A stretch of 64,000 bases of DNA from NCBI GenBank assembly GCA_965644295.1, contig CBFFRP010000357.1, positions 186,001 through 250,000 on the forward strand, read 5' to 3'. The position numbers and the translations under genes are program-made. Origin of the DNA: Paraphysomonas bandaiensis (taxonomy: Eukaryota > Protista > Chrysophyceae). The notes beneath the pieces were generated by a model, which worked only from the letters and a program-made list of their open reading frames with translations, was not told where the DNA came from and did not search any database. Below are positions 14,289-41,251 of the stretch, piece by piece; the first letter of the stretch is position 1; every line of letters begins with the position of its first letter.

Positions 14289-15319
14289 ATGTATTCCGAG
14301 GCTTTCCGTCTTTTAATTTTGGATGTGTTTGATCACTCTCTGGAAATCACAAATTCTGTGGCCGCATCACTAGATCATATATACGAGAAATACGATGTGT
14401 CCCAAAGCACAGTTAGAAGGTGGTTGGACAAATATCTGGACACTGGATCAGTTAAACCAGAGTCTTCACACCATTCGCACCACACTGTCATTTCACTCGA
14501 GCATATCAATTTTGTTAAAGAGTTGCTGGCAGAAAATTCAACTTATTCCAACGAAGAATTATGCGAAAAGGTTTTTAATGTGTACGGCGTGGCGTACTTG
14601 GAGCACCAAATGAAGCATGCCATGAACACTGAGGGCTATACCGTAAAAGTTTGTCAAAGAATTTCCCACAACAGAAATGAGGGCTTGAGGCGTTACTATA
14701 AGAATAATTTGGCCCGATCATTGGATGAAATTCCAGCTCGCTGCTATGCTGTTGTGGACGAATCACATCTCCAGCCGGCAGAAGTTCTACGCCGATATGG
14801 GCGTTCACCACATGGCTACCCTGCCTTCGTGAGTGGTGATGTTATAGGCCACTTCAATCCCCAAGTTAGTTGTTGTGCCATTGCTGCAATGTCTATCGAA
14901 GGAGTTTTTGCTGTTACTGTACACGAAGAAAATGTTGATCATAATACATTTCTAGATGCCCTAGAACATGACATCTTTCCCCACATGAACCCTTTTCCTG
15001 GGGATCGCAGTGTGCTGCTCATGGATAATGCTTCGACGCACGTGAAGATAGATATTTATAATATGTGTGCAGAATTCGGCGTGATGGTTGTGTTTCTCCC
15101 CCTTATTCTTATGATTTTTCACCAATTGAACCCGTATTTCATCTTGCCAAAGCGCACATTAGAAAGAAGTGGGGAATTATGTACGCATATAAACCACTTG
15201 CAGCTCAACTACATGAAGCTTTGTGGTCATGCTGTACTGCCGAAACTGCGTGCAATTTATTCAATCGAGTGGATATTACCGTTACTTGGAAAGAACAGTG
15301 CGAAGCCTGTAACTATTGA
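14289..15319 (+). CDS. DD34E Tc1/IS630-type transposase with a 1-bp frameshift near 15100
   Basis: HTH (VSQSTVRRWL), VVDES, LLMDNASTH; FLP|PYSYDFSPIE continues in another frame (ORF 15065-15319); 34 residues between the second D and E. Confidence 0.88.
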
Positions 15320-15720
15320 TCATTTGCAGATTATACTCTATACTCTACTCACTAGTTACTAATATAGATGTACTGATGATTGAATGTGATATGCTTGCTA
15401 CTACTTCGTGATAGAATATGATTAATTATACGCAATAGATTCAAGTAATATTAATAAATCAAAAAAACAAAATTTTGAAAAGTTTGTGGAGAATTTAAAA
15501 TATCAGTTCATACAGTTGCATACTAAGAAGAAAAAAGAAAATCGGTTAGTGAGTCTAAACCTAAATTTCGATGCATCGGAGCGTATGTGTTAAATTCATC
15601 CAAAAATTACCAAGATTCGAAATAAATAATAAATGAGACCCGGCAGATAACGATTGACTGCAATCTGTTCTATTTAGTAAGGGTCGGCAGGATAAGGAAT
15701 TTCATACTCGGCCTCATATG

Positions 15721-25517: not shown

Positions 25518-27242
25518 TCAACGAGTGGCAGCCATAGAGTTCTTTGATTTTCCCTTCGCTTTACTCTTGTTAGTACTGCTCTGGTGCCCACGCTTCTGTA
25601 GCCGGTTAAGAGTTCTTGCCTTCAGTTCTTCCCTCGTCAGAGGGCGGGTATCATCCTCATCATCATCTTCCTCATCATCTGATTGATAGTCATCGAGCTT
25701 AGGAGGGTTGACATGAAGAAGGTCCTGTCCCATCGGTACCTTTGGTCCCACACCCAGGACCGAAGTAAGGGTTGCAGCCTTACTCGGGGAACCTCCTGCT
25801 ACCGGGGACTCTTGGCCCTCTGTGGAATCTGCGGTCACCAACTGAGAAGCGGACATGGATGGCTGAAGTAGCTCCTGACGGATGTCAGCATATGCTCGTA
25901 AAATACGATTAGCTTGTTGCTCCACTACACCCAGATAGTGAACCATGTTGCTCTCCGTCACAGTCGGATCCACGAAACTATCTTCATCCACCTCTAGCTT
26001 CTCATAGATACTCTGTATGCCACGCTTAAGCGATTCAATAATACGCTGCAAGTCCTGGCATCGAATCTCATACTTTTCAGCCATCGACTCGGAATTCTGA
26101 AGCTTCGCCTCAAGTTCCTTTAGGATCTGTTTGTGTTGATGTACATCCTCACCACTTTCGTGAGCGAATTTGCGTTCTTCTTCACGAAGCATCTGAATTT
26201 GCTCATCTAGCTTTTCAATTTCATTGTTTTGTTCATTGACGTAATTAAACAAACTGAAATTGTGATCTTCGTTTTTGATGAATGTCTTGACCAGTTCGTC
26301 GATATCAGTGATGCCTGTGGCCGCTTTGATTTTATTAAACGCCTCCTCAAAGTTTTGAACACGCTCATATGAGGCCAACACGTCCATTTTCTCCGCATTT
26401 TGATTCCATGTACCACCTGACTTCTTGAGAGTGTCGTCGTCACTTGTATTCGCCATTTGAGCCGAGCCAACGGAGGAGACTCGACTTGCTGGCCTTGTAG
26501 GTCCTGGCAACTTTAGTTCTGTCTCAAGCATTCGGCCAAGCTCAACCATTTGTTCCTCGAATTCCTCTTGTTCCTTGCGATTCGCCTGCTCAATAGCAGC
26601 AACCTCCATTTGATAAGTGTCTCTTTGTTCATAAGACTGGTTCGAAACCTCTATAATCTCAGCCATTTTCTGCTTCTTTTCCTGAAGCTCTCGCTCCATC
26701 TTACGGTATATGTTTTCAAACACTACACGTTCTCGTCTTAAATCATCGATAGCATCACGAAGAGTTTTGTTGTGAGCAATAGCTTCATTGAACTTAACCA
26801 ATGACTTATCAAGACGATTTTCCAATATACGTATTTGTTTTTGAATCATTTGGTAATTTTCTTTTGCTGCATTCACACCACCCATAGCTTTTCTTTGTTG
26901 TAAAACTTTTTGTTTCATAATATGTATTTGTTCTTCCATTGTTTGAATATTTCTTCTTTCATAATCAACTGAATTTGCCATACGATCACACTGATCTTGT
27001 AATTTATTGACAGTCTCTTGTTGACTACTTGATATATTCCTACTTGAACTACGCATCATCATAGCAATCTCACTTTTAATAGTTTCATTATCTTTACGTA
27101 ATTTTTCAATTGTTGTTTGTTGTTTACGTAAAACTGTTTGACTTTCTTCAGCATATGCACGTCGATTTAATTCCATATGACGATATTCACGCTGTAATTG
27201 CTGTAATTCAGCTATACGAAGATCACTTGTTTCGTTACTCAT
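25518..27242 (-). CDS. ODAD1: Outer dynein arm docking complex subunit DC2 (CCDC114/ODAD1 family)
   Basis: 574-aa coiled coil with QIRILENRLDKSLVKFN..IDDLRRER and FIKNEDHNFSLFNYVNE. Confidence 0.88.
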   Translation of the reverse strand: MSNETSDLRIAELQQLQREYRHMELNRRAYAEESQTVLRKQQTTIEKLRKDNETIKSEIAMMMRSSSRNISSSQQETVNKLQDQCDRMANSVDYERRNIQTMEEQIHIMKQKVLQQRKAMGGVNAAKENYQMIQKQIRILENRLDKSLVKFNEAIAHNKTLRDAIDDLRRERVVFENIYRKMERELQEKKQKMAEIIEVSNQSYEQRDTYQMEVAAIEQANRKEQEEFEEQMVELGRMLETELKLPGPTRPASRVSSVGSAQMANTSDDDTLKKSGGTWNQNAEKMDVLASYERVQNFEEAFNKIKAATGITDIDELVKTFIKNEDHNFSLFNYVNEQNNEIEKLDEQIQMLREEERKFAHESGEDVHQHKQILKELEAKLQNSESMAEKYEIRCQDLQRIIESLKRGIQSIYEKLEVDEDSFVDPTVTESNMVHYLGVVEQQANRILRAYADIRQELLQPSMSASQLVTADSTEGQESPVAGGSPSKAATLTSVLGVGPKVPMGQDLLHVNPPKLDDYQSDDEEDDDEDDTRPLTREELKARTLNRLQKRGHQSSTNKSKAKGKSKNSMAATR

Positions 27243-35499: not shown

Positions 35500-36340
35500 C
35501 TTCCATCGCCCCGATGTATGTGTTTACTCAGTATGTATGTTGTTCGAGAGGTTCCCTACAAAGTGAAGCGCAAGACCTGTACCTCTCTTGTTTGTAGCTG
35601 CCCTAGGTTTTGGGACAATGGTCGATACCGCCCCCACTCGCTAGCAGTACATCACTTGAGAGGTATGGGTAGTACATTTCTTTCTTAATTATATTTCTTA
35701 ATATTACCACCAGGGGACATTGATGTGAAGCACATGTCCAGCTCAATCAGGCCTGCTAGGAAACGCGGCCGGCCTCGCAATGCAGCCAAAGCTTTAATCA
35801 ATGATGAATCCATTGATGTCATGGCCCTCAAGCCAGGGAACTGGAAGAATACGTACGTTCGTCACCCCCAGTACCTGAATGGTATGTGCGTAGATTACCG
35901 CGTAGTGCCGAATCACAAGAATCAAAAACTCCTTCGATGGCAGTGTCGGTTCTCGGATGCCCCTGATGACATACTTCCACACCCTAAGATTGTTGGGTTC
36001 GATGTCCATGAAATGAAGGAGGCTGTCGAACACCACCGGACTTGATCACGAGAAACTGCGCATTTCTCGTTCGATTGCGAAGACGAAATGTGATGCATTG
36101 CATGTGTACAATAGATGCATTTGCATTAATTGATGGCTAGAGTATGCTCCCATGTTTGAGTAGAAGTTATTATTTTTGACTAGGTGAATACATTAAAACA
36201 CCTAGTCAACCTAGTCATTGTAAACTGAAAATATGAATTATTAAATGACTAAACTTTTCACCTACTTAACTAGGTTTTTACACCAATTTTGGTGTGACTA
36301 GGTAGTTCAACCATTTCGACTAGGTTAAATAATACATCCC
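35500..36340 (+). mobile_element. 3' fragment of a Mutator-like element (SWIM finger remnant, AT-hook, terminal repeat)
   Basis: VCSCPRFWDNGRY(R)PHSLAV is a decayed SWIM motif; RKRGRPR follows; terminus ..aatacatccc is shared with 24138. Confidence 0.65.
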
Positions 36341-37573: not shown

Positions 37574-37710
37574 GTCTACATTCAACGGCTATTTGCAATC
37601 ACCAGCAGCAAAAAAAGAATTATGTAGCCCGTATATCCCAGTATTTATAGTCTCACAACTATATGCATCTTCAAAACCACGGATAGAAGTAGCCCGTAAT
37701 TACTTTTAAT

Positions 37711-37721
37711 AAACAAAAAAA
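37711..37721 (-). terminator. Pol III oligo-T terminator for the permuted tRNA
   Basis: TTTTTTTGTTT starts 9 nt after the end of the 5' half on the minus strand. Confidence 0.65.
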
Positions 37722-37729
37722 TAATCAGA

Positions 37730-37808
37730 TAGGAGGCTGACGCCGTATCCATTGGGCCAGCAGGGCACAAGTAACCCTACCCGGGATTCGAACCCGGAAT
37801 CTTCAGCT
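37730..37808 (-). tRNA. trnR-CCT: Circularly permuted tRNA-Arg(CCT) gene: 3' half 37808-37773, 6-nt spacer, 5' half 37766-37730
   Basis: The halves reassemble into a 73-nt cloverleaf GCCCTGC TG GCCC AATGGATA CGGC G TCAGC CTCCTA|A GCTGA AGATT CCGGG TTCGAAT CCCGG GTAGGGT T; the flanks form a BHB motif at 37/38; a T-run lies downstream. Confidence 0.88.
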
Positions 37809-38601
37809 TACTCCCAGAGTCTTGTCATCCCGGCTGGGGCTTCAAGACATCAATGTATGATGTAGTCCTATAAAATTATATAATATAAAGTACATTCTGT
37901 ATTTATAATGTATGGGATATATCGCTTCAATTGTTGCATGCATTATCAATCCAATGATCACATCATGCACTGCACAATCATATAACAGAAGATGAATCTG
38001 TGGATTACTATGAATAATCTTATTATTACTCATTCTATCAGCAGTGCATATGTTAGCTCTTCGAAGCTTATCACATCAGGCATATGTGGCGTGCGAGATT
38101 CATTAGGTTGTTGTTAACCGAGATATGACTATAAGCTGCAACGCAATAGTAGACGACTCTATTCCTGCATCATGATCCTGAATGTGAATGGAACTGATCA
38201 TCAAAAATTATCGATTAGCTTCTTGTACTTTATCACTTAATTGCACGTATATCATAACAGTGTTTGTGAAATATGGAAACACTGCAGAGAACATTTGTCT
38301 GATTTTAATAAGAATTATTTTTAAGTTCAGATCATAGGCCAATTTCTTGTATTATGATAAATTACTTAAATATTTATCCAGAACCTGTGCAGACACTCAT
38401 TCCGTTTTGGGTTAACGAAGTATATAAGGAGGGCCTAACTAGCAATCCCTTGTGTACAACTACATCATTAGATTACTCTAACTCAATGACTGTGTTGATT
38501 AAATGCATCTTTTGGAGCAAATTCAGAATACTATATCCACAATCCACAGTAAGCTACAAATTATCGGATATATCTAGAGTTTATTATTACTATCGCCCTC
38601 A

Positions 38602-40197
38602 TTATTGGATATCCTCAGCGTCACCCCCACGTCCCTTCCCTCTAGCAAAAACTCCAGCCCCTTTCACCGCCTCTTCAATAACTACAGGGGTTTCACCCTC
38701 CGACGCTTCCATGCTTAGGGCATCATCGGCACTCATACCCCATTGTCTGTTTAGGTGTATCAGAGGAAAATAGTACAGAGTGCCGTTATACACTTCTTAC
38801 CTGAGGAGAGCATCACGATCCTTTCGTAGACATAGTTGAGGATAGCGAGATAGATCCTGTGCATACTCCAATGCTGCCGCCAGAGCTTGTCCCTGTGGAA
38901 CCACTCTATTAACCAATCCTATGTGCAGAGCTTCTTCCGACCCCACAGCTCGTCCTGCAGAGTAAATAAACTCATGATTACACACGAGATATATTATGCT
39001 CACCTGTAAGGACCATATCCATAGCCCTACATTAAGATTACAATATTAGATACAGTGATCGTCATATATAGTAATTTCATATAATGTAGTGTGTGGGGAT
39101 TACCTGGAGTGACCGATGAGTCTAGGCAGTCGAACTGTTCCCCCATCAACAAGAGGAACTCCCCATCTCCGGCAAAACACACCGAAAACAGAAGATGCAG
39201 AAGATATACGTATATCACACCATAGAGCTAGCTCCAGTCCTCCTGTAAGCACACATACGAAAGTTAGTTTTTTAACACAGCTACCTCTACCAGTAACACA
39301 TGCAAGGCAGCCACTGCAGTACATAATACACAATATATGAGTGTAGCATATCACAGTACGATAATATATAAGTGCACCTGCCACAGCGTGCCCCTCGACT
39401 GCTGCTATAACCGGTTTTGACAGCTGCATCCGCGTAGGTCCCATAGGCCCACTGCGCTCAAACGGCTTAGCCCTACTTTCGGATCGCGGGACGCCCCCAT
39501 GACCCTCAGGAGACGAAAGATATTTCAAGTCATAGCCTGAACAGAACGTTCCCCCTTCTCCTGTAAGGACTGCAGCATCCACAGAACTGTCGGTGTCGAT
39601 GTTCTCGAAAGCTTGGAGGAGCTCTGCAGCAGTTGTCTCGTCCACAGCATTTCGCTTGGACTCTCTATTAATAGTGACCACAACAACTCTGCCGATTCTT
39701 ACAACTTTAATCTGTGAATATTCAATAGGGGTCTCACCGCTGGGATACAATCTCCCATCAACACCAACAGTTTTTCCATCTTCTAGCGTGTATGGCTTAA
39801 GCTGAGGTTCCGGTAATATATCCAGAACTGTGTGAGACGGGCGACAGAGCTTAATATGCTGCTGAGTTACCACCACAGGCCTGTTGATTAGTATCGGATT
39901 TTCAGATACAGCAGCTAATAGATCATCATCAGTTATTTTTGGATCGTCTAATCCGAGTGATGTGTATAGAGCCTCTTTCTTTCTTAGTAAAGTGTGTATT
40001 CCAATACGAGAAACAATATTCTGCAACTCAGATATAGAAGGAGGATTTGTAAGATACTCAATAACACGTGGTTCCATGCCAGTGTTACGTATGAGACCTA
40101 ATACATTACGACTAGTGCTGCATTTGGGATTATGATACAAAGTAATCGCCTTTGTAGTAGTAAAGCTATTAGATATTAGCTTCGAAGCTCTATTCAT
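38602..40197 (-). CDS. ArsC-type arsenate reductase / enoyl-CoA hydratase fusion, multi-exon
   Basis: YHNPKCSTSR..LINRP..LCRP (ArsC) is in frame within one exon with crotonase motifs (VTINRESKRNAVD, FCSGYDL, GHAVAG|GLEL, CRRWGVPLVDGGTVRLPRLIG). Confidence 0.85.
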
Positions 40198-41251
40198 ATC
40201 AGGATACAAGATGATTCAATGAATAATGTAAATGAATTGCACGATACGGCTTCAATGTAGTGGTTAATGCAGCAGAGGTTATATATACACTCTCTCGTAT
40301 ATAGGCATCAATGGATGCATGTATGTATGTATGTATGTATGTTCCTATTGACGAAGTGGAAGAGTTGCCTTACAAAAGCATTTGTAATTTTGTCTGATGT
40401 ATTGTGTAATTTTGTCTGTCGTTGTGTGTAATTTTGTCGTTACTTTATTAATGTATACTATACATATAATGTTGTTTTTTAATAAATTTTGTGGTGAAAA
40501 TCAGTTTTTTACATTGAAAGTTTTACAAAAAATTCTGTTCAATATTCAACATGTTGATGCATGCTGGTGTATCAATACAAGTCTGTATCTATTCCATTAA
40601 GTGTCACCATATATAGCAACCCCTCGCATTAGCAATGCATTAGCTGATAATAGTTAGAAGCAATGATTTCATATATTTCAACAATATCATAGTAGAAATT
40701 AGTAATAACTCTTGTGGTTAATCATATGTGTATATTACTGAATCAGTTCCGTTGTTTGTGAGGGTGTTATTAGTGTATGTTGCATTGATAATACATACAT
40801 AAGAGAACATTATCTTTGTATTATTAACTGATGAAATCTATAGTTTAGAACAGTCAGTGTTCTAAAAACGAAGTTCATGCAAAGTACAGAACCAAACCTA
40901 TTCCCATGATTTTTTATATTTAAATCAAGCAGACTTGTGAAGGCCTCTTTTGTTAAGACTCCACGCAAGGACACTAGACATCGAATCTGATATGACATAC
41001 TTAGCCAACATTACTCCAATTAGATACGGTTTCGAGATAAGAGTTTAGTATATTCAATGGACAATGGACTAATTTAGCAAAGTAAAATCATAGTTTTATC
41101 AACGAATAATTGAAGTACTGAGTATTATTTTTATTCTTATTTCATTTCTTGGTCTTGACCTACTTATTTCCAAGGACTAGGCACATCAGTATCGCAATAT
41201 ATATATATGCCACCACTATACTATAGCAAGGAAACGAAGAGCCAACTACTG

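Follow-up and report, generated by a model that had tools for sequence, protein, structure and literature searches.

In a review published in 2014, 34 permuted tRNA genes were listed from Cyanidioschyzon, two species of Ostreococcus, two of Micromonas, the nucleomorph of Bigelowiella and Thermofilum (PMC3978253), and a 2026 review of tRNA repertoires includes the same lineages and no further ones. Apart from one crenarchaeon, the sources of permuted tRNAs have so far been microalgae, both red and green, and a nucleomorph of green-algal origin, and hence such genes have been discussed as an algal or an ancient peculiarity. The intervening sequence of the known genes has a length of 1-74 nt, and of 5-64 nt in the type II genes of the green algae and the nucleomorph (PMC3978253). 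A literature search found no report of a permuted tRNA gene in a stramenopile among publications represented in part by their titles and abstracts, in line with a preliminary description of the locus presented here, which had known of none.

The locus lies in Paraphysomonas bandaiensis, within a 64-kb stretch of DNA that was analysed as a whole and is referred to as the window. It is probably a functional nuclear tRNA-Arg(CCU) gene with a circular permutation of type II (37/38), one of two paralogues (the second, on contig C363 of the same assembly, is called the C363 copy) that would be matured via a circle and would constitute, as far as the scans show, the only source of this tRNA in the genome.

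Organization and genomic setting of the locus

The permuted gene is located on the minus strand, as are all of its elements given below, and its boundaries were re-derived by script. The 3′ half (37773-37808) comprises the 36 nt of tRNA-Arg(CCU) positions 38-73, that is, the 3′ strand of the anticodon stem, the variable loop, the T arm with the B box, the 3′ strand of the acceptor stem and U73. It is followed by a 6-nt spacer, ACTTGT (37767-37772), which links U73 to G1, and by the 5′ half (37730-37766), whose 37 nt correspond to positions 1-37 and include the 5′ strand of the acceptor stem, the D arm with the A box, the 5′ strand of the anticodon stem and C32, U33, C34, C35, U36 and A37. Both halves were delimited by running ARAGORN on the swapped sequence. 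Downstream of A37 are found an 8-nt trailer, TCTGATTA (37722-37729), predicted to be removed at a 5′ splice-type cut after A37, and a run of seven T residues (37715-37721) that is the predicted RNA polymerase III terminator. The preliminary description had recognized the reversed halves on the minus strand, the spacer and the downstream oligo-T, as well as the inverted order of the A and B boxes, and the script-derived coordinates confirm both points, the half with the B box preceding that with the A box.

In the native order ARAGORN reported no tRNA in the whole 64-kb window and Rfam gave no match at gathering thresholds, while a permissive Rfam scan with the tRNA model recovered just 22 nt of the T arm; this agrees with the expectation that standard annotation misses the gene. 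When the halves were swapped ARAGORN called a 73-nt tRNA-Arg(CCT), in agreement with the cloverleaf proposed earlier, that has an acceptor stem of 7/7 pairs (two of them G-U), anticodon and T stems of 5 bp each and a D stem of 3 bp. The rejoined anticodon loop reads C-U-CCU-A-A, and U8, G18G19, U33 and T54-T55-C56 are present. The swapped sequence can be aligned with the other Arg tRNAs of the genome, from which it differs in the discriminator base (U73, compared with G73 in the normal Arg genes). Neither half was found by script elsewhere in the 64-kb window when up to 5 mismatches were allowed, so that there is no normal-order partner nearby, as had been stated before.

The permuted gene lies between genes in the nuclear genome. 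Next to it, at 38493-40278 on the minus strand, is a gene represented by spliced RNA-labelled contigs that define four GT..AG introns of 49-135 nt, and within it a single ORF (39100-40209, minus strand) includes ArsC-family and enoyl-CoA hydratase domains. Two repetitive elements are also present in the window. The region 36150-36340 is a very high-copy repeat, with a summed contig depth in the DNA-like run X15 of up to 24,934 compared with about 82 for unique sequence, and with many variant contigs and loose ends; an ORF on the plus strand (14289-15362) with DDE_3 transposase and HTH domains likely belongs to a DNA transposon. The 61.6-kb contig C669, which includes nad genes and cox1, is mitochondrial. 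One part of it, L091 (G000:C669:1-10000), has no ORF of at least 200 amino acids and may be a repeat or a non-coding region.

Protein matches and the other results that follow favour, with moderate confidence, a marine stramenopile flagellate that shows no sign of photosynthesis as the host. The best named matches of the ODAD1 flagellar protein of the window are those of Ectocarpus (68%), Mallomonas (65%) and Chromulina (60%), and the best named match of a DUF726 protein is from Ochromonadaceae sp. CCMP2298. A light-harvesting gene (PF00504) was not detected. Marine metatranscriptomes are among the sequencing runs in which the region is present. Symbiodinium microadriaticum has an entry named "ODA1" (P0266, on a 6.5-kb contig), homologous to the product of window region 25518-27242, that is 86% identical to the ODAD1 of this genome, far above any named stramenopile; it is probably a contaminant in the Symbiodinium assembly that comes from a relative of Paraphysomonas bandaiensis. 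Synteny was inspected on a 416-kb ENA contig that includes an 81%-identical ODAD1 gene: the gene and its 10-kb flanks include no tRNA, and the neighbours called there differ from those of the permuted gene.

Predicted precursor fold, transcription signals and processing

RNAfold predicted a cloverleaf for the native-order RNA of both copies, in which the acceptor stem is capped by the spacer as a loop and the remaining stems (T arm, D arm and that of the anticodon) are normal; RNAalifold on the pair of copies gave the same structure as the single-sequence folds. The strand UGGGAG of the leader (37811-37816) pairs with C32-U33-C34-C35-U36-A37 to form the central helix H, which is seen in the consensus fold as well as in the MFE structure of each precursor, with 6 bp in the window copy and 7 bp in the C363 copy. 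Between this helix and the anticodon stem there is a 3-nt bulge (37808-37810) composed of U, A (or G, in the C363 copy) and A38 that is unpaired in every fold, and the 3′ splice-type cut is predicted between 37809 and 37808. The leader G at −3 pairs with C32; with this pair, known as the anticodon-intron pair, the eukaryotic endonuclease positions the 3′ splice site (PMC3978253). Farther upstream both the single-sequence MFE folds and RNAalifold on the two copies include a leader hairpin (37820-37847 in the window copy; L009 1448-1475 in the other) whose loop, CCAGCCG, is the same in the two copies and whose stem has four pairs in which both bases differ; a comparison of these two sequences hints at a hairpin that is possibly conserved between the copies.

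The preliminary description had proposed a bulge-helix-bulge motif at the 37/38 junction. The helix between leader and anticodon loop and the 3-nt bulge at the 3′ cut agree with that proposal, but the second bulge and the short outer helix were not favoured in constrained folds. Keeping U36, A37 and U unpaired as a second bulge carries a penalty of 2.4-2.6 kcal/mol and gives neither copy an outer helix, on which basis the strict bulge-helix-bulge (hBHBh′) was rejected. In both copies the MFE structures, and likewise the consensus fold, contain the relaxed hBH motif, in which the anticodon stem is followed by a bulge of 3 nt and then by a helix with 4 bp or more. Type II permuted tRNAs in green algae and in the Bigelowiella nucleomorph have this motif too, and it suits a eukaryotic enzyme of the ruler type (PMC3978253).

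A TATA-like element, TTTATATTATATAA (37876-37889), is located 68-81 nt upstream of A38, the first mature nucleotide, and may serve as a promoter element for TFIIIB and Pol III. Of 32 normal nuclear tRNA genes examined, 30 have the motif T[TA]TATA[TA] within 90 nt upstream, compared with 9.4% of random 90-nt windows, and its position in these genes is mostly −63 to −31. It lies further upstream in the permuted genes, at −81/−74 in the window copy and −111/−109 in the C363 copy, and this distal position would give a leader long enough for the pairing strand. We infer that the motif is the promoter, and the start site likewise. Concerning termination, most normal tRNA genes have a run of at least five T residues 0-5 nt past the 3′ end, and the permuted genes have theirs (T7 in the window copy, T9 in the C363 copy) 8 nt after A37. 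There is no T4 or longer run between −50 and the terminal T7 in the window copy. The C363 copy does include a T4 run, at the boundary between U73 and the spacer, and given this internal run it may be the weaker gene. The spacers, of 6-7 nt, include no promoter, and in the window copy there is neither a promoter nor a terminator between the halves. An upstream promoter-like element, a downstream T-stretch and a signal-free spacer are thus present, as in a single transcription unit, with the boundary T4 run of the C363 copy as the exception.

Flanks were also compared among the normal tRNA loci (L095-L122). Families keep family-specific 5′ flanks, as in the case of five tRNA-Phe(GAA) copies on three contigs (G000:C158, C263 and C297, loci L109-L111) that share about 30 nt upstream, which, together with the TATA-like motif of nearly all tRNA genes, suggests that the tRNA genes of this genome depend on upstream promoters for their Pol III transcription and have long conserved leaders. 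Three RNA-labelled contig sets had zero depth over 37671-38004 and no back-joints; the RNA libraries for which there is a record are all polyA and so are silent on expression. Genes for candidate processing enzymes were located in the assembly. A Sen-type endonuclease domain, tRNA_int_endo (PF01974), is encoded at G000:C51:16424-16609 (30.2 bits, above the cut-off), and a full-length RtcB (PF01139) is encoded by a 414-residue open frame at G000:C281:480143-481225 (160 bits).

A possible course of expression and maturation is as follows. RNA polymerase III would start downstream of the TATA-like element and stop at the T7 run, generating one precursor made up of leader, 3′ half, 6-nt spacer, 5′ half and trailer. 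According to the folding results this precursor would adopt the cloverleaf with the acceptor stem closed by the spacer, and the pairing of UGGGAG with C32-A37 would set A38 in the 3-nt bulge adjoining the anticodon stem. The steps of cutting, ligation and spacer removal are modelled on those of Cyanidioschyzon, Ostreococcus and Micromonas: by analogy, the tRNA splicing endonuclease would cut before A38 and after A37, for which it may use the mature-domain ruler and the C32:G(−3) pair; a ligase of the RtcB type would join A37 to A38 and render a 79-nt circle; and RNase P and tRNase Z would remove the spacer after circularisation, with addition of CCA.

Second copy, other tRNA genes and alternative explanations

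BLAST of a 120-nt unit against the organism's own assembly (62.6 Mb, 669 contigs) identified exactly two loci, the one in the window and G000:C363:605575-605677. The 3′ halves of the two copies are identical at 36 of 36 positions and the 5′ halves at 37 of 37, which amounts to 73/73, while the spacers differ (the 6-nt ACTTGT in the window, the 7-nt TTCGTGT in C363). The leader UGGGAGU and A38 are kept in both copies. The first 3 nt of the trailer are conserved and the rest has diverged, identity in the flanks drops to 35-37% over no more than 100 nt, and an alignment of the two 3-kb loci covers only some 103 nt. Since the whole arrangement is repeated on a second contig with 100% identical halves, chance is excluded as its cause. 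The diverged spacer and flanks also rule out a recent duplication or gene conversion as the source of the 73/73 identity. A duplication or conversion tract would not skip 6-7 nt in its middle, which favours purifying selection, and the pattern points to such selection on the mature-tRNA nucleotides and on the leader strand. As their sequences indicate, the two loci are neither alleles nor an assembly duplicate.

The assembly was scanned by pattern for a normal Arg(CCT) gene and for further permuted tRNAs, both of which the preliminary description had recommended looking for. UCCUA followed by a T-loop at tRNA spacing gave 11 matches in the whole assembly, below the reversed-pattern control, and ARAGORN found no tRNA among them. 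A pattern that joins the end of the D-loop to a YUCCUR loop at fixed spacing, and that also catches intron-bearing genes, gave 9 matches compared with 11 in the control, and the permuted pair alone represented tRNA halves. With at most one mismatch, the Arg-type D-loop led to normal genes for Arg(CCG), Arg(TCT) and Arg(TCG), two of each (one locus was examined for Arg(TCT)), and to CCT only in the permuted pair; a variant of this D-loop also matches C324, the site of two tRNAs in the RF00005 listing. The Arg(CCG), Arg(TCT) and Arg(TCG) genes examined are all intronless, in normal order, and have G73. BLAST against the 62.6-Mb assembly found neither half outside the two permuted loci. A normal Arg(CCT) gene was therefore not found in the pattern scans of the assembly, whose reach ends at divergent intron-bearing genes in normal order; the RF00005 search of the assembly scored 63 of 2,525 candidates. 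As far as the pattern scans reach, the permuted genes would be the sole source of tRNA-Arg(CCU) in the genome. In five ORFs of the window that were confirmed by Pfam, 21 of the 146 Arg codons are AGG, and codons in use need a decoder. The tRNA-Arg(UCU) genes that are present could cover AGG by wobble, in which case tRNA-Arg(CCU) need not be essential. One of the patterns encountered belongs to a dispersed repeat, found in at least 45 places of G000 (for example C11:104379-104409 and C357:291431-291461) as identical 31-nt tRNA-like matches, and ARAGORN called no tRNA in the copies examined.

For further permuted tRNAs, two scans for a B box followed by an A box (T-loop, 19-45 nt, D-loop) gave 18 and 37 matches, in both cases fewer than the reversed controls. 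Leaving aside the packed mitochondrial tRNAs of C669, complementary acceptor strands, checked with ARAGORN for the 18 matches and by eye for the 37, were found only in the Arg(CCT) pair. Within the range of these scans, which is that of consensus boxes and of junctions in the interval from D-loop to T-loop (genes with other junctions or non-consensus boxes would be missed), Arg(CCT) with its two copies is the only permuted tRNA of the genome.

Metagenomes were examined for an orthologue in one exact-pattern scan (T-loop, 17-40 nt, Arg D-loop), and none was found among the 31 loci recovered. Thirty of these loci are tightly packed clusters of normal tRNA genes and one (L079) has an odd Arg(ACG) arrangement. 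The latter, on the minus strand of the marine metagenome contig Ga0115012_10078390 (approximately 1497-1546 plus about 60 nt upstream), is a different permuted-looking tRNA, in which the T-loop and acceptor 3′ strand are followed by a 7-nt spacer, the acceptor 5′ strand with the D arm, and a T8 run, and the ACG anticodon arm is found about 53 nt upstream of the T-loop. When the upstream part was linked to the initial ~24 nt of the 5′ part, with 26-31 nt deleted, ARAGORN called a tRNA-Arg(ACG) with an imperfect T stem. The locus may represent another organism's permuted gene that bears an intron and has its junction near positions 24-27.

The locus could also be a non-functional relic. Tandem duplication is the accepted model for the origin of permuted tRNA genes (PMC3978253), and a tandem duplicate of an intron-containing tRNA-Arg gene that lost its outer halves would leave a rearranged, unused pseudogene; the U73, atypical among the Arg genes of this genome, fits such an origin. 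We consider this improbable because the 73 mature nucleotides are identical on two contigs while the embedded spacer and the flanks have diverged to background, because the T-run terminator and the leader helix are kept in both copies, and because no other Arg(CCT) gene was found while AGG codons are in use. The presumed function of the permuted gene is supported by its conservation and its context.

Quite improbable is, in our opinion, a tRNA-like non-coding RNA that is used without rejoining of its halves, a Y RNA-like or mascRNA-like molecule in which the paired ends would be a protein-binding stem with a mimic of T arm, acceptor and D arm on top. The best sub-threshold Rfam matches are indeed to RNAs with such a topology or with a tRNA-like fold, namely YrlA (18.7 bits, E 0.19) and mascRNA (15.3 bits), but the gathering scores of these families are far higher (69 and 42.5 bits, respectively), and membership in YrlA or a Y RNA-like family (RF02553) was rejected on these values. 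Furthermore, with the halves joined at 37/38 an exact anticodon loop of 7 nt (with U33, CCU, A37 and A38) sits on a 5-bp stem, and an Arg-type D loop is present, all of which would be needless in a mimic, and the absence of a normal Arg(CCT) gene would be left unexplained.

An assembly artefact, by collapse or mis-joining of a tandem array of normal tRNA genes, is exceedingly improbable: the unitig of run X15 in Logan does break at 37779, within the gene, but such a break is expected of a two-copy exact repeat in a de Bruijn graph, X15 depth extends throughout the bin 37671-37837, the same order is found at two loci with unrelated unique flanks, and with neither half elsewhere in the 62.6-Mb assembly there is no normal-order array to collapse. 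Two other classes were discarded. A split, trans-spliced tRNA of the Nanoarchaeum type does not agree with halves that share a strand and are separated by 6 nt devoid of promoter and terminator, and a tRNA-derived SINE does not agree with only two copies in 62.6 Mb and a reversed box order. Points against the preferred reading, a functional permuted tRNA-Arg(CCU) gene, are the U73 where the normal genes have G73, the disfavoured strict hBHBh′, a TATA-like motif more distal than in normal genes, and the T4 run of the C363 copy.

Comparison with known permuted tRNA genes

If true, the occurrence of a permuted gene in a stramenopile without light-harvesting genes would mean that the standard eukaryotic splicing machinery tolerates and maintains such genes in an unrelated lineage, which favours their repeated origin by tandem duplication of intron-bearing genes. 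A more extensive reading, to which we assign an even chance, is that of an independent origin in a heterotrophic stramenopile, the first outside Archaeplastida-derived genomes and Archaea, with a tRNA-Arg(CCU) that would depend wholly on two permuted genes, a ruler-type endonuclease and a circular intermediate, and with the leader hairpin as a new processing or transcription signal. Standard annotation, be it with ARAGORN, Rfam or, owing to its design, tRNAscan-SE, would list no tRNA-Arg(CCU) for this genome. The two copies, which differ only outside the mature nucleotides, represent a simple system for the leader features that the endonuclease needs.

The gene shares with a canonical intron-containing pre-tRNA (37/38) the anticodon-intron helix, the pair of C32 with intron position −3, the 3′ site in a 3-nt bulge and an intact mature domain, on which the ruler mechanism of the endonuclease can act. 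It differs in that the canonical precursor releases its intron, whereas the "intron" is open here, its ends being the leader and the trailer, so that ligation would circularise the tRNA. A likeness to YrlA (RF02553) resides in the order of T arm, acceptor-like stem and D arm inside a stem formed by the two ends of the RNA; in contrast to YrlA, the stem that closes the structure is a genuine anticodon stem whose loop can be restored.

The gene logic is that of C. merolae (2007, 2013), where TATA-like upstream elements are also common to permuted and normal tRNA genes. Maturation via a circular intermediate has been demonstrated in that alga. The C. merolae permuted Arg(CCT) is of type IV (59/60) and has an extra intron at 14/15, while the one described here is of type II, and the 11 permuted genes of C. 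merolae, with four junction positions and many strict hBHBh′ motifs, compare with a single type II species with the relaxed motif.

The closest relatives in structure are the type II genes of Ostreococcus, Micromonas and the Bigelowiella natans nucleomorph (Maruyama et al. 2010; PMC3978253). As in these, the 3′ half is upstream, the junction is at 37/38 with an hBH motif, the spacer is short, there is no intron within the halves, an AT-rich or TATA-like region is found upstream and a T-run downstream. The type II (37/38) assignment of the gene described here is based on the order of the halves, the short spacer, a canonical cloverleaf, the hBH junction, transcription signals and genes for the endonuclease and the ligase. 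The differences include the possibly conserved leader hairpin and the number of permuted species, which is one (in two copies) compared with 3-6 per genome in the green-algal and nucleomorph type II sets. O. tauri has a permuted Arg(TCT) of type II. A type II Arg(CCU) is absent from the published list. The host is a stramenopile with no sign of photosynthesis, whereas those of the other type II genes are green algae or the relict nucleus of one. In its predicted properties the permuted Arg(CCT) gene matches the green-algal type II class in each feature that can be tested, and it differs from that class in host lineage, in being the single permuted species of its genome and in the isoacceptor.
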